DNA of 60,526 bases, the filler included, from Platydemus manokwari (lineage: Eukaryota), in NCBI GenBank assembly GCA_037951405.1. It is 5 parts of 5 records of this genome, joined end to end, with 100 filler letters (N's around TTAATTAATTAA, not from the genome) between each part and the next. Parts side by side here need not be neighbours in the genome. Positions count along the whole stretch, not along the records: positions 28,478 to 38,614 come from JBBMOY011164769.1; 4 more parts are not named here. One strand, given 5' to 3'. The notes below the pieces were generated by a model. It was not told the DNA's origin and searched no databases. It saw nothing but the letters and a program-made list of their open reading frames with translations. This document shows positions 25,901 through 41,255 of this stretch, one piece after another (position 1 is the first letter of the stretch; each line of letters begins with the position of its first letter). Position numbers and translations under genes: made by a program.

Positions 25901-28900
25901 TCAAGATTAAATTAATTATAAGATCAAATAATAAGATGATTGTAAAAGAAACAATAAATTAATAGAATACATAAAGGAATAGAATGTTAAATTTAAAAGA
26001 ATTTCATTTTTAATACTTAAAATAACAATAATTATCTTATGATGAGAAGTGAAAAAAAATAATGGTTTATTATTATTAGAAAAAGAATTAATTAGATAAG
26101 AAAAAACATAGGAAAAGCTAGACTGTCGACCAATATATAAACAAATACCAAGCTACATAAATTCAGAAACTAAAAATTGAGCATAAAACCTCGATCAACT
26201 AGTTTGCTGATGAAATCAAAATTAGTCTGTCAATTTCTGAAATGCAATACAGAAGAAATCACAGAATTTTAATCAATGCTTTCTAGCATTAATTAAATTT
26301 AAATTTAATTCAAAACAATTTTTAATTCACATTTAATTGAAATTTAATTCAAATTTTATAAAAATATATATTAACTTAAAATTAGATTTATTTGTTTAAA
26401 TATATGTATATAAATAGATTTTTTATGTCTTGACTTTTCATTTCGTTTTTAATGTGTGGTTTTTTAAAATAGTAGCCGCTAACAAACGTCTCAGATGTTC
26501 ATAATTTTAAAATCAATCAAAGTATTCTTAAAATCACACAAGGCCAATAATATGGTGGACAAGTGGCATACTTTTCACAGAGGAATTGAATGATCTCTAT
26601 ACACCTGCATATAATATACTGTAAATATTTGTAGTAGTTTGGAATAAAAATATTCGGTGATAAAAATGTTTTTGTTGTATTACAAGATAAGATAAGATGG
26701 AATCTTCAAATAAAATAGGATGCAAAAGATCAATCATGATTTTACTGAGACTGTGCGCATTCATGCTTTCGCTTGTAAAAGAAGTCATTATTAAGATTTC
26801 CTAAATATTTATTTAATTCCAACAAATATTACAATTTTTAATAAAATTAAAATTCTTTTTCTAGAGAGATTTCATTATCAATTTTAATTAGGTATAGATA
26901 AAATATATAAATAATTTAATAATTATTTCATATTAAATATTCCAAAATAAATTTTTGTTGCGTTTTGTGCTTGCTTATTTATTTTTTATTCATCTTATCA
27001 GTCTCAAAATTAATTTATTGTTGATCACTGTTGTCTTAATCAGTGCACTTGTGGTCCTGATCGAGCCCTATGTACGAACTATTGAACCTATTTGTTTATT
27101 TCTTCGCCTCGCGTTTAATATTGTATGACGACAATATCAAACTGCAACAATGATCAATGGGTATTAAAAAAAACTATAATGATTTCAAAAGCTATCAGTC
27201 TCAAATCAAATTAATAACAAACACTTGAGTTTTATAAAACGTTTATTGACACCAAAATTACAACTAACACCAATTATAAATTACCACAATAGCCAAATGG
27301 TTAAATAAAATATACAATTATACGAAAATTTCTATCAAGCCTCAGGATAAGTTACAAGGTTAATAAACTGCATGCTCTAGCAGCAAAAACACTTTCAAGG
27401 ACATGCGACAAAACTCTACAATAGGAGATTTACACGAAGTCTATATTAACGATCAGTTTTTTATATAAGATCAGAACGTGTAAATGTTATTATTAATATA
27501 ATTATTTTTATTCTTTTCAACTAAATTATCCGAAAGCTTGATTAACAATTTTAATTAAAAATAAAATAAAATACAATGCTTGATTTATCAAGCTTAACAA
27601 TAAAATTGCTACAACTATATCTGCTTGAACTATCAAGCCAAAATTGATACATTGTATTAAAAGATAAAAACTGTTACAGTCAAGTCATGCACAATAAATG
27701 TTTTTTGATCAGTCAAATGAGACAATTTAGTCACAATTGAATTGATGAAATTGTTAATATTTGGATGAGACTTGGTTAGTAAAATTTTGCTATTATTTTG
27801 TTGAATCCCCAACATTTTAAATTGTAATTAAAAAATTTTTATTAAAATTTTCATTTAAAAATATTATTTAAAATTATTATTATTTAATTGGAATTCTCCT
27901 CACATTCATAACATAATAAATAAAAATATTCCTAACAATCATGTAATATTCATACGAGATTGTGTAAATATTTCAATAAATTTACTTTAAGAATTCAAAA
28001 AAATACGAAATCTAAATTATTTAAGAATTGAATATCAACATAGATTATCGATTTCAGATCTCTAAATGAGAACAAGGTATATAGTTAATTTAATTAAAGA
28101 ATGAATGAATGAACATTATCTTGTCAATTGCTGTTACAATTCTGTCACATACATTTATGGGTATATCTTGTCCGGGTGACATTCGATAATATTAAATGAC
28201 AATAAAATGCTAAATTACAGCAATAGAATAAATTTAATGTTAGTAAATGGAATTATAAAGGGTTTTATATTTTGAAAAGATTGGTGAAATCAACAATAAC
28301 GCCACTAAATTTAAGAATGAGAAAATAATCAACGAGAACAATAGTTTTATTAGAATCGTTTTGAAAATTATGCTGAGNNNNNNNNNNNNNNNNNNNNNNN
28401 NNNNNNNNNNNNNNNNNNNNNTTAATTAATTAANNNNNNNNNNNNNNNNNNNNNNNNNNNNNNNNNNNNNNNNNNNNAAAAATAAGCAGTGATATTATTA
28501 AATATATCTGTAATTAACTAACCAGATTTATAATAATAAAAATTTAAATTTAAAAACTCAAATAATGATTAGAATAGGAACTTGGTTTTAAAACTATGTT
28601 AGACATCTTTAAAGAGATATTAACTGAATTATACGAATATATCAAACATAGTAGTTATAAATAAAATTAAGTTATAAAATTATCTCATGCGCGAAAATTC
28701 ATTGTAAAGAAAGTAAGTTAAAGTACCCTTTTTCTTAACTTAAGCCAATATATTTAATGAAATTATGCTTGCTGCTGTTATTTTATAAAAAAACGAATCT
28801 AAGAACTTTAAATCATAAAAATATATTTAATCGATTTATTCAAATGAATTATGTATATCAATTATTCAATAAACGAATTAATTCATTATCAATGTATTAA

Positions 28901-29828
28901 ATCCAATGTACTTAAATCATCGCAAAAAATTGAGCATCATATTGAGTTTTATATTTATAGAAAAATATTTTATGTGCTTATTTTTCAAAAAATATTAGAT
29001 GTCATGAGAAAAAAATTCCCTAGTGTTGAAATGTTAATCTGCCAATAGTGGGCGTGGATATGCGTATATCGTTTGTCGATTTTACATCTAATGTTTGTTT
29101 GTATTCAAATCGTACCCCCCTACGTGATAAATGTAGTTGTTAAAGTTGAATTTCGTTAAATAAAATTGTCTCGAAAACGAATTGAATGAAATAGTGATTT
29201 GTCGATTAATATGTGAGTGAGTGAGTGTGTGTGTGTGTTTTGGATATTTAATTTCATATAATATTCAAGTTTCGCACGATGAAATATGTTTTCAATTAAC
29301 TGAAGATATATCGCAATTGCGTGAAAATTAAAATCATATGTTAATCGAGAGAATTTCTGTTTTATTTTCGCATACTAATAATTAAATAGCACGTTGACAG
29401 GCTGTTATATGCGAATTGCGATTTCCTTGTTTAATGAATGGGTTGGGGAAATTATTGAAAATTGGAGAAATTAACTTGAGATTATCATAAACAATCGAGA
29501 AACGTCATATCTTTTAAAAATAATGTCTTATCTGGGAGAAAATTTAATATTTTTAAAAATCAATAAATTATAATTCTAAAATTGTGGTTTCAAAATTGAG
29601 GTTGACCGTTTGATATGGTGGGTATGGCATTTATGGAAATGGGTTTCATTTGTGTTGATTAATTCTTGGCCACAAAAGTCATTTTGAGTTTTAAATACCT
29701 GAAACTATTACGTTTTATATTGATTTTTAGCAGTTTTTTAATTAGTTAATCATTATTACTTGAAATTTGTATAAATGGAAAAAAGTATGTTTTACTTTAG
29801 AAATTTAAGTTATTGTAAAGTTTTTTAG

Positions 29829-30963
29829 GCTGTCTTAACATTGATTGGATTGGAATGCATAATTATAATAACTATAGATATCTGTGTTCGCTTCATGTAA
29901 ATTTCAACGCTTTCAATTAATATTAAAATTTGTATATAGCTTGCTTATAATTGATATTTCGACCATATATGCCATTGATTTAGTATTCCTTATTTTGATT
30001 TTTTGGAACTATCTGTGCTATGGAATAATGTCAATGATGTGGAATATGCCAACGGAAGGAAAGCAATGGTTTATTATAATTTTAGCAGCGAATCTTAGCT
30101 TTATAATGATCAAAATAATCCACCCACAAATAATATGGGTTTTCATTTTAATATTATCCCTAATAGGTTAGTAAGATTTTGATTAACAATTTATGCTCCT
30201 CAGATTTTTTATGGGAACTGATACCGTATTTTCGAATAACGGAGACCGAGTTTACTAATGATCTTGATGTAAGGTTAAAATATGCCTTAATGTATACAAC
30301 GTTGCCAATGACAAGTTCGTCGATAATGCATGATTCGTCGATTGCAAATACATCAGAAAACAACATTTTCGAATGTTATAAAAATGAAGATAAAGATTTT
30401 TATATTTTTGACGACTTTAACACATTTACAACTAATAATTTTATAGGTTCTACGAATGATACGATAAATAAATATAATTCATTAGACAGAAACACTTCCG
30501 CTTTATCTCAGCCAAGTTATAGTCACCATAAAGTAATTTGGTTTCACAATTTTAATAATGTTCAACGTATGATTAGAGGTTACCCAAGGAATTAAGAACT
30601 TATGGACTTCGAGAGATCAAATTATTACAAGTAACTTTATTTAGTTTTTAAATTATTATTTCTCTTTAGAATAAATGCATAAAACGAATCAAATCAGGAG
30701 TCCAAATCCCAGTATCAAACTTATTGATGTACAATTTATTGTTCGCTGTCGTCGGATCTCGCCAAAATGCCTTAGCTCTTTATTATTCCTTTTTGTGCAC
30801 GTTTTTTTGTATCCTTATTAAAACTATATTCCATATTCATTTAGAAAAATCATTTCCAAATCAGTTCTTCTCTTTATTTTTAATATATACAATTACAACA
30901 TGTGTTACCGCATTTGTAACCACACATAATGAAAAGAATTTTTTAAACAGTATATATCCATGA
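29829..30963 (+). CDS. Divergent presenilin-like protein (TM3-TM9), predicted catalytically inactive
   Basis: Phase-consistent exons 29829-29896, 29940-30166, 30204-30532, 30577-30630 and 30670-30963. The spliced product YAIDLVFLILIFWNYLCYGIMSMMWNMPTEGKQWFIIILAANLSFIMIKIIHPQIIWVFILILSLIDFLWELIP aligns without gaps to presenilin TM4-TM6 (VAVDY...[63 protein letters not shown]). A hydrophilic loop and three further hydrophobic segments follow. The N-terminus is unresolved. Confidence 0.8.
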
Positions 30964-30972
30964 AACCTTTAT

Positions 30973-33058
30973 TTACAAAAAATGCTTGTTTAACTGTTCT
31001 GTTTTTGTAGTTATTTGATCATTACATATTTGAAATTGTTGAGAATAAAACATGGCCCATTTGGATAATCTATCAAATTCATTTTCTAGTTCAAGGATGT
31101 CTTCATTAGATATACGGATATTATTATTATCTGTATTTTTGATAATTTCATCTTTTGATTTTTGATTATCGATGTCAACATTGGCTGTCTGATAAATACG
31201 ATTTTCAATTAATTTGTATAAATCTGAATTGAAACTTCCAGTGATTTCAGGCAATTGAGAAATATCATAATCAACTGTTCTAGATTTAAATGATTTAAAT
31301 ATATCATAAAAATCATTTTGTTTATGATTTTTTGTTGAGAAATTTTCAACGATTTCTGATATTGATTTAAATTTAATGTAATCGTTTTCTTTGTATTTAT
31401 TATATATTTTAAAACCTTCGTGTAAAATGTTGGATTTATCAGCTTTATTTAATTTCTTAACTATAACATTGTCAACTTGGGCATTAATTAGATTTTCAAG
31501 TAAATCACATGGAATTTCACCTAAACAAAATGTAAAACAATGATATATGAATTATTTAAAATACTAGGTAATTGATATAAATCTATGCAACATTTTTCTT
31601 TTATATCATTCAATAAATGCCACTCTTCTTTTGTAACAATACTAATTACAGCACCATGAGAACCTATTTTAAATAAATTAATTATAAAATAGGCAAGTAA
31701 ACAACCATATCTTCCGGCCCGGCCCATTCTATGTAAATATGTTTCAAAATCCCATGGCAATCCGAGATTTATCACCAGATTGACATTTTCAGCATCAATA
31801 CCCCTTGAAGTCTAACATTATATTAAAACGTGATAGCAATTCAAATGTGACATTTATTATTCACCGGATTTAATAATTCATAAACATAAGCTCACCAAGT
31901 CTGTCGTAATTAGTACTCTACAGTGGAAACTTTTTAACTTGTTATATATGCCAATTCGCTGCTTTTGATCCAAACTCCCTGATATATAAGCACTTGACCA
32001 ACCTTTCGAATCTAAGATATCGCATAAATCTTGTGCTCTATTTTAAAATAATTATTCATAATACATAATGTATAAATTACATAGATTGATAATTTGAAAA
32101 CACAATACACTGTTGAAAGTCAACAGATGACAAAATTTCCAAAAGAACTTCTGTTTTCGAGAAAAATATTTCTCTAGGTGATAAATCTTCACAAATAAGC
32201 TTATAATAATGCGTTATTCCAAGTAATGTAGCCTTTTCGTTTTTATTAAGACGAATCATAACTGGTGAGTTCATATAGGTTATTATAGTGTCAATCATTA
32301 CATCTGTATAAGTTGCTGAAAGAGTAAGCATTTGTTTGTTCATAGGCAAAGCATTATAAATATAACTAAATAGATATTAGAATGATTTCCAAATTCAAAT
32401 ATTACTTCATCGTATTTTGAAAATTATCAGTAAAAAGCATATCTGCTTCATCTAGAATTAATAATCTGATCGAATCAGTTTGAATATGATTTTCTTCGAT
32501 TAAATACTTTATTCGGCCTACAATTTATATAATTCTCTTTCAATAAATGTACATTTACCTGGAGTTCCTACTATAATGTGGCAATGTTTGATTTTTTTCA
32601 AATCTTCATGAACCTTAATACCTAACACAAACTTTAATTGACAAATTATTAAAATTATTACCGCCTATAAATAATTGACAATTAAGATTTTCAAGAAAGC
32701 AACCGATTGATTGTATAACATTTAAACTTTGGAAAGCAATTTCTCGAGTTGGTGATACAATTAATACTTGAGCAACTTTGCTGGGTATGTGAATGCATTC
32801 TAAAGCTATTACTGAAAAAACACAAGTCTTTCCTGTTCCAGATTTAGCTTGAATAATTAAATCTAAGCCAAGCAAGCCCATTGGTATTGCCTTTACTTGA
32901 ATAGGTGAAGGATAATTAAAACCATTAAACAAAAGTCCTTTAAGAACATTATCTTTTAAATTAAGTTGAGTAAATAAAATGTTTTCTTCGGATAAAACAT
33001 CTTCAGTCCTCTTTCTTTTTTTATTAAATTCAATATCACCTTTATTTATATTAACCAT
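30973..33058 (-). CDS. DDX20: DEAD-box RNA helicase DDX20/Gemin3
   Basis: Q-motif [52 protein letters not shown] and [10 protein letters not shown]. Introns at 32622-32661, 32518-32558, 32366-32405, 32038-32080 and 31812-31895 plus two more; long last exon 30973-31520. The [13 protein letters not shown] and [12 protein letters not shown] strings are DDX20-like. Confidence 0.9.
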
Positions 33059-33599
33059 AAAAACAAATTTTCTAAAACTTAATGAAAAGTTGAACTATAA
33101 AGCATAAAATTTGCATTATTTAAACAAGATATAAAACAAAATTGCACGCTAAATTTTTTGTTTTTAAAAATGTTGCTTTTAAAATGCAATAAGGTATAAC
33201 AAACTTTTTAAAATTTTATTAACATTAAAAAATTTTTTACAAAAATGTTTCAACACCCATTAATCAGTTTCATTATAACTAATTTTACGTTAAAAATTCA
33301 TAAATACTTATAAATAAATACCTTTTAATTTCTATTATATCTTATAACTATATTGTTTCAATATATTATAACATCCTAAGATAATCATACATGTCCTGTT
33401 TAACATTTCCTAGTTGTATTAATGGAATTAACTTAGTGGCTCTATATTTTTACAATTACAACATTATACAAAACTTTAAGTTACAACTATTTCATTTCAA
33501 CAAAATGATACTCGATAACAAACATTAACCATTAAATTATGTAAAAACCATATTCTAAGTCAATTTATAAGAATATAATTTTAGACTAAATGCCGAAAA

Positions 33600-34762
33600 T
33601 TAATTTGAATTTTCCGAATCACTTCTGCTTCTTGAAAGATTTCTTTCTTCGAAAGAATGATCTTTCGATAAACTTCTTTCACGATTTCCTTGTACAGATT
33701 CTTCCTTTTCACTTTTCTCTTTCTTCACAGAAGAATGACTGTCATTTGAGTGAACACTATACCCTCTCGACTTGCTTTTATCTCGTGATGTAGAATGTTT
33801 TCTTCTTGAGCTGCTCCTACTTTCCTCCTTTGAAGGACTTTTTCTTAAAGGTGAACGACACCAATTATTTCCGTTTTTCAAAGGACTGTTTGATCTTCTA
33901 ACACTTTTGCTTCGACTTCTGGAACTTCCTGTTTTAACTTTTTTCTTAAAATAATAATAAATTAGTATTATTGAAAATTAAAAATTACAGCTGGACTTTT
34001 TGATCTCGATGAACTGCGTCTACTTTCATATGATTTACTTCTCGATGATGATCGACGAGATGATCGTCTTCGGCTACTGGTTGAGCGACGAGTTGATCTT
34101 TTCCTACCTTTACGGTAGGACGTGGATCTGCTTGAATGGGATCTTGACCTAGTTTTGGTCCTTCCTCTTACACTATCTTCATATACACGTAACTTTCGCC
34201 CACTGATTTCATATCCATCAAATTTTTTAAGAGCAGCTTTCATATCAGCCCGAGTTTTAAATTCAACTATTCTATATGTTCAAATAAATGAAATAATAAA
34301 AATAAAAACATTTAACCCTTCGTTTTGTCTTCTTTTGTGAGCATCTGCAAACATAACCTCCCCAGTTTTCCTCATTAAATCTTTTAAATCTTGCCAGCTA
34401 ACTCTAGATGGCAAATTTTCTACTAACAATCTATAATCAGTTCTAATGGGAGCATTACCGGCAAATCTCCTGCTGCTACAATACATATAAGGAAATAAAT
34501 CTTACAAAAAAATTAACCTATCAAATCGACGAGGACTTCTTCGACCAGATCTAGCATGTTCCAAAACAACTCGACCTCCTGCCAATTCTTTGTGGTGTAA
34601 ATCATGAATCGCATCATCGGCATCTCTTTCATTATCGAATTCAACAAATCCATAACCACTTTTCAATCTAATATCTTTAATCCTTCCATAACCTTTGAAA
34701 AACCTTTCAACATCTCTTTCACTTGCTCTATCAGATAATCTTCCAATAAAAACCCTTGCCAT
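33600..34762 (-). CDS. SR splicing factor, SRSF4/5/6 (B52/SRp55) family
   Basis: RRM1 ([16 protein letters not shown]), pseudo-RRM2 with SWQDLKD, and an RS domain. Exons 34518-34762, 34317-~34475, 33989-34271 and 33600-33944. Confidence 0.93.
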
Positions 34763-35599
34763 AGTTTAAAAACTCTAACATGTATAAAATAAAATATTTA
34801 ATAGCAAAAATTTACAAAATGCCTACTTTTTAAAATTAATTATTAATAAAACAAAATAGTAAAAATTTATAGTTTTTTAAAACAAATTAATACCTGATAG
34901 TTGTTTTTTCATAATATAATAAAGTATTAAATTCATAAATGTGAGTATAGAGAAATAAAGAAATTTTCAATTGGAGTTTGTTATAATTTCATAAATTTTT
35001 GTAGATATAAAAGATTTGAAAATTTGCTAAGTACATTATTTATAAATAATATTGTTTTACAATTCTAATAACATAAAGTCATAGTCAGAATATATAATTA
35101 ACTTTATTGGAATTATTAAATAGTATTATGTGAAAAAAAGTTAACAAATAGTTTTGTCTTTACTACAAATGATTGATTTGACGTTGGGCCTGACTGTACA
35201 TGTTGTGAATTAGTGTAGTTTGAAAATATAATACGGTTGATGGACTGAGAATATGTTGATTAAGAATTATTATTGATCCTAAACTCAATAGATTTATGAA
35301 TTAACAATAAGATTAGCCATTTATTTTTATCAATATCACACCAAGTAGTAATTATTGTTTTATTTTGATAAAAAAAATATAGTTTTTTGTAACATGTTGT
35401 TATCGTTGTAAGTATGAAAAAAACAAATTCAAATAATAAACATAATGAATATTTTAAAAATAATCACAATAAAATAAAACACCTATAAATTTAAAAAAAT
35501 ATTACTTAAGCTAGATGAAAACACTACCTAGAACAAAAATCACAATCGCTTAAATGAAAAACTATTAAAGGCATGATTTGCTTCGCTCATTTTTTCGAT

Positions 35600-37660
35600 A
35601 ATTCTATCAACCTAAAGTCAACCAATAAAAATAAGCAACAAGTTCATATTAATGATAATTATAGCTATATATGTTGAATAAACCTCAATTCATTTGTTAT
35701 ATAATTATTTATACCAATTATTAAAATCTAAAACTGTAAGTAAACTTAATTCTGCTTCAGTGACTTATTGATGATGCTTAATTAGAACCTTTATCTTTCA
35801 TCATAAAATTTAATAAAAGGTCTCACAAGTTTCATCTATCAGAAGTATTGTTGATACTGGTTGAACTTGAGTGTTTAATCCATTTTATTTGTCATTTTTT
35901 ATGTTAGAAATTAGACTTGAACTAAACTTTTAAATTTCACTTCTGCTTAAAAAATTTAAGTGTATGTATTAATCTTTTTGTCAGTAACTAAACACCAAGC
36001 TTTTCTCGAAGTCTCCTCAAAAATATATTAAAATATTTTTAAATTTCCTTCTCAAAAACTTTTGCTTTTCTGGCCCCAATCTCGATCAACTTCCATTTTT
36101 CGTTTCCAACAATTCATTCAGTTTTGAATCTGGTGAATTCATATGTGTAAAAATTGAAAAAGTAGTTAATCTTTTAGACTTCAAAGTATATTCCTATCAA
36201 AATTACAAAAATTCTATGGTTGGTTAAGAGACTATGTATCTGGTTTCGACAGGGACTCTAAATTTCTCATGTCTTGGCTTTAAATAAAGTTAGTTTGGTA
36301 TGTGTAAAGGTAGTCGCATATATGTAATCGAAGAACCTTACTAGATCTGTTAGGGGGTTGAAATGTTTGTGAGAGAGACTTTCAATATCTTGCTTGCTGC
36401 AAAACACTGGTTGAATTTGTTGGGAAGTCGGTTAATCAAACAATCTTTAAATTTCAAAACCAAAGATTTTGAACAAAACTTTTTAGTTCAAACACAGTGA
36501 TATTCAGCATTTTGTTAAGCTTCAGCTGGAAATAGGTCGTGTTTGCTACAAAATTTATAGCCAAAACTTAGTGTGTTAACTGTACCATAATTCTATTCGA
36601 TGTTTTGATTTTTAAGATTTCAGTTGAAGTTATCTATTTATGACAACTGGAATTAGTCAGTCGTTCTGTAAGTTATGCAAATATGTATTTTATAAAATCC
36701 AAGATTTCGGAGTGCCTTCATTTAGCTTTCTTTGGTGATAGAGGGCTTCCTTAATCTTTTTGAGGACTCAAATACTTGGAAAACTGAGGTTATTTAAAAA
36801 AATAGCTGTGCTATATACCGGTGGAGTGCCGCAATGACATCCCAATGTTGCTGAAATAAGGTTAATCGACCTTTTAGTTAAACCAAAACGAAATTTAAAA
36901 TATGGTGTCGTAAGATCTCTCCTTTGTGTCACTGGTTATTAACAATGCTATGTTATTAACAAGCTCAATCCTGGTTCAATAATACTTATTTTAATAAGTG
37001 AAAATTTAAATATTTAAAAAAGATAACACAAAAGTACCAAAATGCATGATGCCACTGTACTAGCAGATGGTCGTGCGAATGCCAGAACATCTTCAAATTG
37101 GAAAATAATACGTAAATCTTTGTCGCTAGCTTGATAGTGCAATAAAAGCATTAGATTTTAAAAATGTATAATTAAAGCAACTCACTTCTTTAATTTTTTT
37201 CTTGAACAAATCATTCACTAAAATATCCTCTTCGTTCCCTGCTGTGCCGTTAAAAACTCAGCTTCAACTAATTGTTATTCAGAAATTGCAAATTTGCGTT
37301 TAGCTAACTATGATAGTAAATCCGCACCATAATTTGTCATTTTAAATTCATTTATCTCATTGTACATTTGTACTTCTGTCCTTCTTAAATTTCTAAATAT
37401 AGATATATTACAAGGAGTTTGAGAGATACTACCTTGACGATGGTATTTGGTAGTATTTGATGTGACTATTTAAAGATAATTCATCTAGTAATAACTCGTT
37501 GAAAAATCTGTAAATTAGATAGAGATTATTAAAGTCAGAACAATAGAGATTACACCAATTCTGATAGGTATCCAAATCAGAATAGTAGGTTGCGTGCATA
37601 ATTCGGATAGTATAGTAATGATAAAATAATAAAATAATGAACCAATGATATGAATACTTT
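35600..37660 (-). pseudogene. Decayed Cys-containing coding-like segment, possible env/viral glycoprotein relic
   Basis: Minus-strand fragments with hydrophobic stretches, N-x-T sequons (FNGT, FNYT) and Cys clusters (TKRSINLISATLGCHCGTPPVY; KFCSKHDLF; FCSKSLVLKFKDCLINRLP); many stops. Confidence 0.3.
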
Positions 37661-37949
37661 TATTATAATATAAAATTATCGAATGTGTAATGCTAAAATA
37701 TTAACAAAGGTTTAGTGTTGATGAGAACCAACCGATGTAGGGAACTAAGTGCCGCCCTACTTAGGACAATAAACTATAGATGTGAGTTTTCATTGCAAAC
37801 CTTTTCGGCTTTACAATTAGTATTTTAGTTCTGCAAATTTCAACGAGCTTTGCGAGGGGATGAGTGAAGTTAAATCAATAAAATCTACCATTGGCATAAA
37901 TTTATAAAATTGATTAAAAATATAAAAGGATTATAGGATGATGTGTACC

Positions 37950-38480
37950 TAAGCTTAATGTTGAGGTATCCCTAAGCTGAGTGAAGATAATTGATTCGAA
38001 AATTTCAATGAAGTGAAGCTTGTCCAAGAAGAATGTAGTCGCTTATGAGTGTAGATAAAACAGAATGTGGAATTGCTACGAGTCGAGATAGTGCACCGAA
38101 AGTAATGTACTGAAATTTTCTCCCAGAAATTTATGTGCCATTTCCCAATTTTGAGATTGGTTTATATATTTTCTGTGAGAGTGGTGATAAATTTTCCTCG
38201 AATTATTTTTTCCCTTAGTAATTTATTTATTTTCCGTTGTGATTCAACATTACTATTGCTTTCGCCTTAGCAATATGCAAATCACCATGGTGATGTGAAT
38301 TAATTTCGGGGTTGGCTTATTCAACTTATTATTTACATTATTAGTGTGGGTGGGATGTAGGCTGAATGTTCCCAACAACTCACTCACTACAATCGTTTGT
38401 TTATAAATTCTGGAAACCAACACCAAGGTGTGGTTTATACTACTATACAACGCATATAAAATTTTCATTCCGATTCTTCT
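37950..38480 (-). mobile_element. Degenerate LINE AP-endonuclease fragment
   Basis: Ordered remnants SAYIPP, HGDLHI and LISDY match the APE motifs Y.PP, GD.N and SDH. Confidence 0.35.
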
Positions 38481-41255
38481 CAATTTGAAATATAATTTTT
38501 AAAAATCGGTTCAGAAGAAAATTCTAATAAAAATAATATATTAAAAATGATTGAGAATAAATTCCAAATTTGAAATTTAACTATCAATACTATTCCAGCC
38601 CTTGAAATATATGANNNNNNNNNNNNNNNNNNNNNNNNNNNNNNNNNNNNNNNNNNNNTTAATTAATTAANNNNNNNNNNNNNNNNNNNNNNNNNNNNNN
38701 NNNNNNNNNNNNNNTTTATTATAATTATTATTCTTATTACTTTTATTATAGTTAACAGTAGTATCGACATGGAAAATAAAATAATGGATTTTATCAAGTT
38801 AATTCTTTTCCACCAGCTTAATAAATGAAAACCAACATTGTGTAAATGAATTATTTGACTAACAAATAAATCTGATCATCATTGCAATTTATGATATCAT
38901 AACTTGATAATAATTATTTTAATTGGTTATGTAAACAAATTTTAAAATAAATAAACAACAACTGAGCAATAATATTTGCTTTATTTACACTGGGAATTAC
39001 ATTTGTTACTGCTATTCGTACGTATGCGATTTTATTTAATTCTGGCTCACAAATTGTGATAATTATCAATGAATTAAACTATAATTTGACATTACGTAAC
39101 AGGTTATTTATTAATCGATTGTTTTATTATATCAAATAATAAATTGAAAACAAAATTGATTTATTATTTTTCAAGAAACAAAACATAGTGACGGTTATTT
39201 TGATGTTGTGCGATGATCTATTTGATTATACATAAATTTCAAATGGGTTGGAATACCCCCACCTCCCTTGATTGTATTACAGATTCGAAACTATTCTCAA
39301 TTTAATTTTATGAATACATAATTTTCAATGATTTTATTGTTTAATTTTTATTGGTTTTCATTTGACTTATTTCAATTTATCGTTATAAAACAGTAATAAT
39401 ATACGATTTTTGTTATCAATTATTTCCATACTAATAGACAGACCAACCATCATAATGGATAATATTATGTTTTAAAAATTATCTAATATACAAGCCTTAT
39501 AATATTATGTAACATATTTAATATTAATGTAAGCCACTACTCTTTCATAGAATGTGCCTTTCAAATTTTGATTTAATCTAATGATTTAAACAAATAAATT
39601 GATAATTTATATCTTTAAGGTATAATATTTTAAATTTGAATTTATCTAATAGCCCTCGGAATAGTTTGATAATTCCAATAAGCATTTCGCGAATCAGTTT
39701 TATAGTTTGCTTTATTCCACGTCATATGATCAGACCGATAATCAAAGATTTAGTAATTCGTTTATTGGTGGATTTCTCCACATAGTCATTTCACTCACAT
39801 CTGATATGACCTATCAATTGACTGTGATCAGCTTTTAAAATTGGATTTTAAATTTATATTAGCTCACTACTCACACATATTTCTGATTAAGATTTTCATT
39901 TAAACGTTATCTAGTTTTGCTCTTCCGTACTTTTCTCAGTTTTTGTATTTCAATTTACACACAACCGTCTCATTATTGTTATGTGACATCTTCATAATAA
40001 TAATTGGAATTTATAGGAAATACAATAAGATAAACAAATTAAACACGCCATTCGGTACCATAAAACGTTTCGAGTTATTTTCTCATTATAATGACAGAAT
40101 TTACACTCTATTATCTATTCAGACATCTTTATCATTTATTGAATTCTTAAAATTGATGAATGGAAGATTTTGAAAATATTTTAAAATTGTTTATCGTTGT
40201 GATCGGATAAACAAATTATCAAACGGTTTAGAAAATCACAGTACTTATTTTCACGATGAAAACTGATTCCAGTGTATAAACAATTCGAGAAATATGCAAT
40301 GAATTGGAGTGATTATGTAATTATATTTTCCAATACAATGTATTTATCACCATGTAAAATATATTTTGTTGATTTTATATTAATATGAGCTTCATTGTAA
40401 AATTTACTGCAGCTATGACTGATAGTTGGTTAGCAATAATAATAGGTAATAATAATTACATTATTTATTTTTATTTTTGCTTATGGAAACATAAGGAAGC
40501 ATTATTATATTCTTAGACAGACATTCAAATTAATATTTTCAAATATAAATAGAGAGAAATTAAAGTTTAATTCAATAGCATCTTGTACTACATAATAAGT
40601 AGTAGGAAATATTGTTTCCCCATAGCGTTAATATATGGATAATGGTTACTATATGGATTTAATGAATTAACAGTTCGAGTTCAAGGAAAGATATTCGAAG
40701 ACTTTCAATTCATTTTTGATTTTTATTAAATTTTCTTTTCCTATCATATCAATCGCATTATAAAATTAAATCCTATTCAATGATAAAAATACTTACAATC
40801 CATTGATGAGGAAGGGTAATTGTAATCGAAACATTCAAACCTTTTTAAGCCACATCAAATAAGATTGAAATACACACATGAAAAATTGTGGCTTATTTTT
40901 GTAAATAATATGAAAATAAAAAATGTTTATAGCATAATTTAAGTGAAGAATTAGAGATCGTGAATCATGGATAAGGTTTTTATTTGATGAATACTGAATA
41001 TCAGAAGAATACCTAATGGATCATAGAATTGGAAAATCAATAGGAAAATATTGAATGAAAAAATACTTAAAGCTATCTGGCACCAACTCAAATGAATCTT
41101 ATAATAAATTATTAGCAGCTAAAAAAGGAGGAAATAATAATTTTTATAATTCAAAAAATTGTATTTTAATAAAATTGCATAAGTTATGGTATATAACCAA
41201 AGATAGAAAATACAAAATAATTAAAAAGTATTATTATTAAGTTCTATTTTAGAAA

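Follow-up and report, generated by a model that had tools for sequence, protein, structure and literature searches.

The locus and its gene model

The piece of Platydemus manokwari DNA described here (positions 28478–38614 of the window, by which we mean the whole stretch of 60,526 nt that was analysed) has a G+C content of ~27% and carries very short GT-AG introns. A presenilin-like gene lies on its forward strand (29829–30963), followed by two genes on the reverse strand. The nearer of these, at 30973–33058, encodes a DEAD-box helicase in several exons (Pfam DEAD and Helicase_C), which by its N-terminal motifs we take to be DDX20/Gemin3-like. It is convergent with the presenilin-like gene and the two stop codons are 10 nt apart, so that the helicase gene bounds the 3′ end of the presenilin-like gene. 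The farther one is an SR-protein-type gene (33600–34762) with two RRM exons and then Arg/Ser-rich exons. Its introns start with GTTAA or GTAAT and end with AG (TAG or AAG); at ~42–45 nt they are of the same size class as those of the presenilin-like gene (37–44 nt). Beyond it, nearly 4 kb (34800–38614) contain a single ORF of at least 60 codons and no tRNA or Rfam match, and represent either a gene of very small exons or non-coding sequence. The tRNA and Rfam scans were blank for the whole 28478–38614 piece. A short GTGA/GT microsatellite is found at 29205–29249, upstream of the presenilin-like gene.

An initial annotation of this DNA, made by reading the letters, had proposed five in-frame exons of ~320 codons, and frame translation together with a phase check bears this out. 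Joined over 29829–30963, the exons give 972 nt (323 codons plus TGA) with no internal stop, and the introns (43, 37, 44 and 39 nt) are all GT..AG. Exon 1 (29829–29896) is hydrophobic and TM3-like, an uncertain assignment with no Pfam match. Exon 2 (29940–30166) covers presenilin TM4, TM5 and most of TM6. A GAT codon for Asp (30166–30205) is interrupted by the 37-nt intron at 30167–30203. Exon 3 (30204–30532), a 109-codon open frame, completes TM6 (D-FLWELIP), continues with an ALMYTT stretch whose likeness to P-ALIYSS is by eye alone, and turns into an Asn/Ser/Thr-rich hydrophilic loop; beyond the initial residues it has no hydrophobic stretch. Searches of Pfam, PDB and Atlas with exon 3, whole or reduced to its first 37 residues, gave zero matches. 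Exon 4 (30577–30630, flanked by introns 30533–30576 and 30631–30669) adds 18 codons of loop and, by sequence reading and phases, is the sole in-frame bridge between exon 3 and the last exon. A four-exon model with a later donor at 30579 was ruled out on the same grounds, as TAA follows right past the junction. The last exon (30670–30963) encodes three predicted helices, read as TM7–9, and ends in TGA after a conserved tail, NFLNSIYP. In a nine-TM test the architecture reads as a TM3-like segment, TM4–6, a loop of ~125 residues and three C-terminal helices, and the exon order is colinear with the presenilin family profile.

One could suppose that such frames are open by chance or through recent loss of function, in a decaying and untranslated relic of a presenilin. 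Single open stretches of ~95 codons do arise in shuffles of the piece (the longest ORF in shuffles averages 94 codons), the catalytic motifs are gone (see below), no start codon is secured, and among public runs no RNA run matched. However, the locus combines five open exons with matching phases and canonical tiny introns. Open stretches of at least 95 codons number nine in the piece, three of them within the presenilin-like gene, versus a mean of 0.49 in mononucleotide shuffles. A frame disruption test detected zero stops or frameshifts and four canonical introns, and so did not class the gene as a pseudogene. Together with the conservation of the last exon described below, these observations make a decaying relic very unlikely.

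Splice sites and phases support the five-exon model as first described, but its 5′ end does not stand equally well: exon 1 has no ATG, an in-frame TAG directly upstream (29826–29828) doubles as the acceptor, and other 5′ models fit equally. Enumeration of GT-AG chains returned several complete alternatives, all on the forward strand. Model B has a first exon at 29775–29819 with an ATG at 29775, a 58-nt intron (29820–29877) and then an unspliced stretch, 29878–30166; with the extension 29878–29939 the Pfam Presenilin match grows to profile positions 100–183 at unchanged score. Model C draws its 5′ exons from 29615–29744, with an ATG exon (29615–29642), a 36-nt intron and an exon at 29679–29744; from exon 1 of the described model it uses the last 19 nt only (29878–29896), and it proceeds from 29940 onward (7 exons in frame, 1017 nt, 338 residues). 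Its second exon encodes FKYLKLLRFILIFSS, which resembles the YKYRCxK...LIxSS boundary of TM2/TM3 and is the best upstream piece against a custom presenilin profile (colinear positions 108–127, 1.6 bits, a score that ~3.5% of shuffles reach). By this resemblance model C is a possible true 5′ end, and we treat it as a lead. Upstream ORF pieces gave zero matches in Pfam, and neither Pfam nor the custom profile located TM1, HL1 or the greater part of TM2 within the 1.35 kb upstream of the gene. No 5′ model supplies TM1/HL1, and the protein may be N-terminally truncated.

An independent public run, the sole one with this stretch, aligns to it as genomic contigs without splice joints. One of its contigs is letter-identical to the window over 29769–31300, with zero variants. 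Nothing from the run aligned to 29000–29540, and upstream of 29769 the contig has 15 letters that do not match the window there and are absent from all of it. Hence, the assembly upstream of this position may differ between samples. The mismatch could be a structural difference of the sample, an assembly join or a contig-tip artefact.

Exon 2 and the presenilin family

The comparison with Pfam Presenilin (PF01080) that had been suggested for the spliced protein was run exon by exon, and gave a match for one exon. Exon 2 (75 residues) matches by itself with an E-value of 9.3e–5 (21.8 bits, profile positions 119–183), which is below the gathering score of 34.3, a mark set for the whole protein, whereas exon 2 was scored singly. 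The other exons of the gene gave no Presenilin match. In a phmmer search of the PDB, exon 2 retrieved PSEN1 and PSEN2 exclusively (E 0.002). Its residues 10–74 fall on PSEN1 191–255 in a single gap-free block of 65 residues that ends two residues before Asp257, and extension of the alignment by two residues brings the split GAT codon onto Asp257. Two features read earlier from the letters are thereby confirmed, namely the gap-free alignment of TM4–6 to presenilin and the retention of the TM6 Asp in a codon split by the intron. The TM6 motif reads ID, with Ile in place of the Tyr of YD. In blastp, the best partners of exon 2 are animal-type presenilins (27–33% identity over 63–64 gap-free residues, E-values down to 3e–7). 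At 30004–30012 the exon reads WNY, at the position of the TM4 WNF site that has been linked in presenilin to PEN-2 binding (PMC9504248).

We also built custom profiles from 38 full-length presenilins and 58 C-terminal fragments, taken from metagenome contigs with the canonical GLGDFIFY; contig L035, labelled human gut, was excluded, and none of the contigs was considered to be human. Many of the contigs drawn by the GLGDFIFY pattern (L002–L121), which come from metagenomes or metatranscriptomes of marine and freshwater origin, carry full-length presenilin ORFs free of introns; a few encode unrelated proteins in which the pattern occurs by chance (e.g. L034, L110 and L116). Against the custom presenilin profile exon 2 reaches 17.0 bits, whereas the best of 2000 full or block-8 shuffles is at 10.1 bits.

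The high bias term in the custom profile search and the sub-gathering Pfam score could be taken to mean that the gene encodes an unrelated multi-pass membrane protein, and that the match of exon 2 is an artefact of hydrophobic composition. A phmmer search of the whole library with exon 2 may be read in the same sense, as it returned just three biased, multi-stretch matches that are unrelated by Pfam. A further search for homologous proteins with this exon found nothing. However, the shuffles keep the composition of the exon and do not come near its score, all PDB matches are to PSEN1/PSEN2 in one uninterrupted block, and none of ten further hydrophobic ORF pieces from this region matched Presenilin in Pfam. 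The last exon independently indicates the same family by its Atlas features (see below). A composition artefact is thus a most improbable explanation. Judged by these alignments, exon 2 encodes genuine presenilin TM4–6, and the proposed presenilin descent of the gene is supported through this exon by Pfam, PDB, the custom profile and blastp alike.

The last exon and the active-site motifs

With the last exon as query, a single protein was retrieved, P0001, which is encoded on a genomic Logan contig of 1368 nt from another run (L001, 49% G+C). The last exon and L001:51–341 are identical at 70 of 97 residues (72%), gap-free; this orthologue evidence is one fragment and covers the last exon only. 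The orthologue shares the acceptor site ahead of an identical NKCIKRIKSGVQ and the residue at which the protein ends, and the same helicase gene lies downstream of it in convergent orientation. The C-terminal tail of that helicase is just 44% identical between the window and L001, and gapped. Used as a query, the two-species alignment of the last exon yielded no further relative, and a metagenome scan for relatives of this exon found none.

GC3 of the last exon is 28% (30670–30960) versus 85% in the orthologue. For exons that are 72% identical in protein, such a difference in composition between related genomes is extreme. We estimated dN at 0.19, with dS saturated. Since the last exon is conserved at saturated dS, and its acceptor site and its neighbour are shared, the gene appears to be maintained and not decaying, in support of the earlier suggestion of a gene kept by selection. 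A dN/dS near 1, which had been named as the signature of a plain pseudogene, was not seen for the last exon in this comparison with one orthologue. As far as the two sequences tell, there is strong purifying selection on the translated last exon, which argues against a pseudogene. In particular, a relic would hardly retain such identity with zero indels across the shift in GC3, or a stop codon and an acceptor site at the same positions in both species.

It is less straightforward to establish that the last exon corresponds to presenilin TM7–9. The gene could be chimeric, with a presenilin NTF-like half (TM3–6 and the loop) fused to a C-terminal module of three helices that is not derived from TM7–9, in which case the change from GxGD to PVSN would be a replacement and not a series of substitutions. 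Conventional searches are consistent with a chimera and gave the claimed equivalence no support. The last exon had no match in Pfam or PDB phmmer in either species, whether as a single sequence, as the orthologue or as a two-row profile, and against the custom profile of C-terminal fragments it scores 2.2 bits, which 15–31% of shuffles match. When the two-species alignment was compared with the alignment of C-terminal fragments in hhalign, GVQIPVSN fell on GIKLGLGD and FPNQ on LPAL, but with a P-value of 0.05 that 13% of block shuffles equal. Thus neither the HMM nor the profile–profile test separates the last exon from shuffled controls. An AF2 model of the exon (two-row alignment) is of low confidence (pLDDT 53), and a Foldseek search of the PDB with this model returned no match at an E-value of 0.001 or better, with potassium channels in the top rows. 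Because the model is too poor, the outcome of this fold search is meaningless.

However, a language-model feature search of Atlas with the last exon alone does support the equivalence. Its top three clusters are Presenilin C-terminal fragments (scores of 0.88, 0.88 and 0.86, with 194, 191 and 178 shared features, respectively), and SPP families come next. All three scores fall short of 0.9, and the recognition value, 2247, is just under the mark of 2300; such scores are rated as leads. As exon 2 had already pointed to this family, a chance match to it is improbable. The number of helices also fits presenilin. They span residues 15–28, 34–58 and 64–95 of the low-confidence AF2 model, with VSN and PNQ at helix starts, and GxGD and PAL in PSEN1 are likewise located at helix starts. 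By hand count, the GV[QK][IL] anchor is separated from the P of the PAL site by 46 residues here versus 48 in PSEN1, and the register is the one recovered by hhalign. We therefore regard the chimera as unlikely, and homology of the last exon to presenilin TM7–9 as very likely.

The initial annotation had read Asn in place of the second catalytic Asp and PNQ in place of PAL. These letters are as claimed: 30706–30720 reads IPVSN, with AAC (Asn) at 30718–30720, and 30856–30864 reads PNQ at the expected PAL site, where Pro alone is retained. Their exact equivalence to GLGD and PAL is less secure, given the hhalign statistics. In the orthologue the two expected sites read MPMSS and PIQ, so that the would-be Asp is represented by N in this gene and by S in the orthologue; both species retain the P, S and LL around it, as well as P..Q at the PAL site. 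The D-to-N change is thus not conserved as such in the one orthologue. Variation between N and S fits a site that would no longer have a catalytic role. In neither species does the first helix of the last exon, between KSGVQ and HLEK, contain an Asp or Glu. We searched all six frames of 28478–38614 and found that no G.GD is encoded, nor any PAL with a hydrophobic residue or Pro directly after it (the pattern used). The claimed loss of GxGD and PAL is borne out by this search, as well as by the orthologue. Because no frame supplies either motif, the first helix is non-acidic and the convergent gene follows 10 nt on, we consider the canonical second catalytic site to be absent. With one aspartate and no GxGD/PAL pore, the product would be unable to act as a di-aspartyl intramembrane protease.

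Activity might nevertheless persist if the gene model were incomplete, with an outside exon or an alternative transcript that carries GxGD and PAL, or if a non-canonical residue had taken over. Several 5′ models fit the gene, and the divergence of the second dataset upstream of 29769 means that the assembly near the 5′ end may be imperfect. However, the place of both motifs is 3′ of the loop, and there the adjoining convergent gene leaves 10 nt past the stop and is the same neighbour in both species. An alternative exon supplying GxGD, which the initial annotation had named as evidence against its own reading, is encoded in none of the six frames of the 10-kb piece, and the orthologue is also devoid of GxGD and PAL. 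As for a substitute residue, Asn or Ser cannot stand in for the general-acid/base Asp of an aspartyl protease, according to established enzymology. A still active protease is therefore extremely unlikely.

Overall, a dead presenilin is probable, since the middle of the gene is clearly presenilin-related and yet all the cutting motifs are gone. We find it rather likely that the locus holds an intact presenilin-derived (A22A) gene, without the TM7 Asp, GxGD and PAL, which is kept for a non-catalytic membrane role. Going by its sequence, it is probably a natural presenilin pseudoprotease. The earlier claim to this effect holds for protease homology, catalytic loss and purifying selection in the parts that could be tested, but not for exact positional equivalence across TM7–9.

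Relation to known presenilins and pseudoproteases

Compared with PSEN1 and PSEN2 (A22A, PF01080; e.g. PDB 5A63 chain B), the gene shares the gap-free TM4–6 at the identity to animal-type presenilins given above, the placed TM6 Asp, a W-N-aromatic motif at the TM4 PEN-2 site, and a long loop followed by three C-terminal helices. It differs in having ID for YD, IPVSN for GLGD (MPMSS in the orthologue) and PNQ for PAL (PIQ in the orthologue). The search for TM1 and hydrophilic loop 1 was negative, and the C-terminal third has diverged too far to be picked up by HMMs. The SPP/SPPL (A22B, PF04258) and archaeal PSH (PF06550) families belong to the same GxGD clan and are the lower-ranked Atlas neighbours of the last exon. 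However, exon 2 matches Presenilin only and no SPP models. SPP family members bear the YD, GxGD and PAL motifs. Within the presenilin family, C. elegans SPE-4 is described as the member that has diverged most; it has been aligned with presenilin-1 with the catalytic aspartates indicated, and cleavage of a target by SPE-4 has been proposed by the authors (PMC2383881). The gene described here resembles SPE-4 as a strongly diverged, lineage-restricted and presumably specialised presenilin relative, but differs from it in being without the TM7 Asp, GxGD and PAL.

Protease-independent roles of presenilin (calcium handling, trafficking, lysosome function and scaffolding) are debated, and have been studied mostly via engineered Asp-to-Ala mutants. 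Dead presenilins (PSEN1 D257A/D385A and Dictyostelium PsenB D348A/D394A) can still restore non-proteolytic functions in both moss and Dictyostelium (PMC4927835), which sets a precedent for non-catalytic roles. They resemble the present gene in having a presenilin body without a working dyad, and by analogy may serve as a functional model for it. However, they are laboratory point mutants that are otherwise intact, whereas the present gene is natural, and its active-site region has been remodelled throughout and is conserved as such. Among rhomboids, iRhoms and derlins are family pseudoproteases (PMC3149277). They likewise have an intramembrane protease fold, have lost the catalytic residues, are under selection and act by binding membrane proteins. 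Their fold and class are unrelated (serine rhomboid versus GxGD aspartyl), and the likeness is an analogy only. In the literature searched we found no description of a natural presenilin stripped of its active site, which does not prove that none exists.

Taken together, the parts of presenilin that appear to be kept are the TM4–TM6 core with the TM6 aspartate, the TM4 WN[FY] site, the large hydrophilic loop and a C-terminal module of three helices with its conserved tail. The TM7 aspartate, both GxGD glycines and PAL would be lost, and probably TM1 and hydrophilic loop 1 too. Such a protein might function as a non-catalytic membrane scaffold or as a binder of transmembrane segments in the ER and the secretory pathway. 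By one route, it would be a dead subunit that docks to gamma-secretase partners through TM4 and the C-terminus; the WN-aromatic site and the conserved C-terminal tail make this putative docking plausible. By another, it would act as a stand-alone protein with no gamma-secretase partners. We tentatively suggest, as a possibility that falls somewhat short of an even chance, a ‘pseudo-presenilin’ that lacks TM1/HL1, the TM7 Asp, GxGD and PAL and either serves as a non-cutting gamma-secretase-like subunit or decoy, or binds transmembrane segments by itself.

If this reading is true, the gene would be a natural experiment that shows which parts of the presenilin body serve non-proteolytic roles. 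The GxGD clan would then gain a pseudoprotease branch, a counterpart of the iRhoms, which reshaped the understanding of the rhomboid family. The meaning for the organism depends on the rest of its genome. With a canonical copy elsewhere, the gene would be a paralogue and a possible regulator; with none, it would be the sole, degenerate orthologue. In the latter case it would indicate that a streamlined animal lineage has lost gamma-secretase proteolysis and, probably, canonical Notch cleavage as well.
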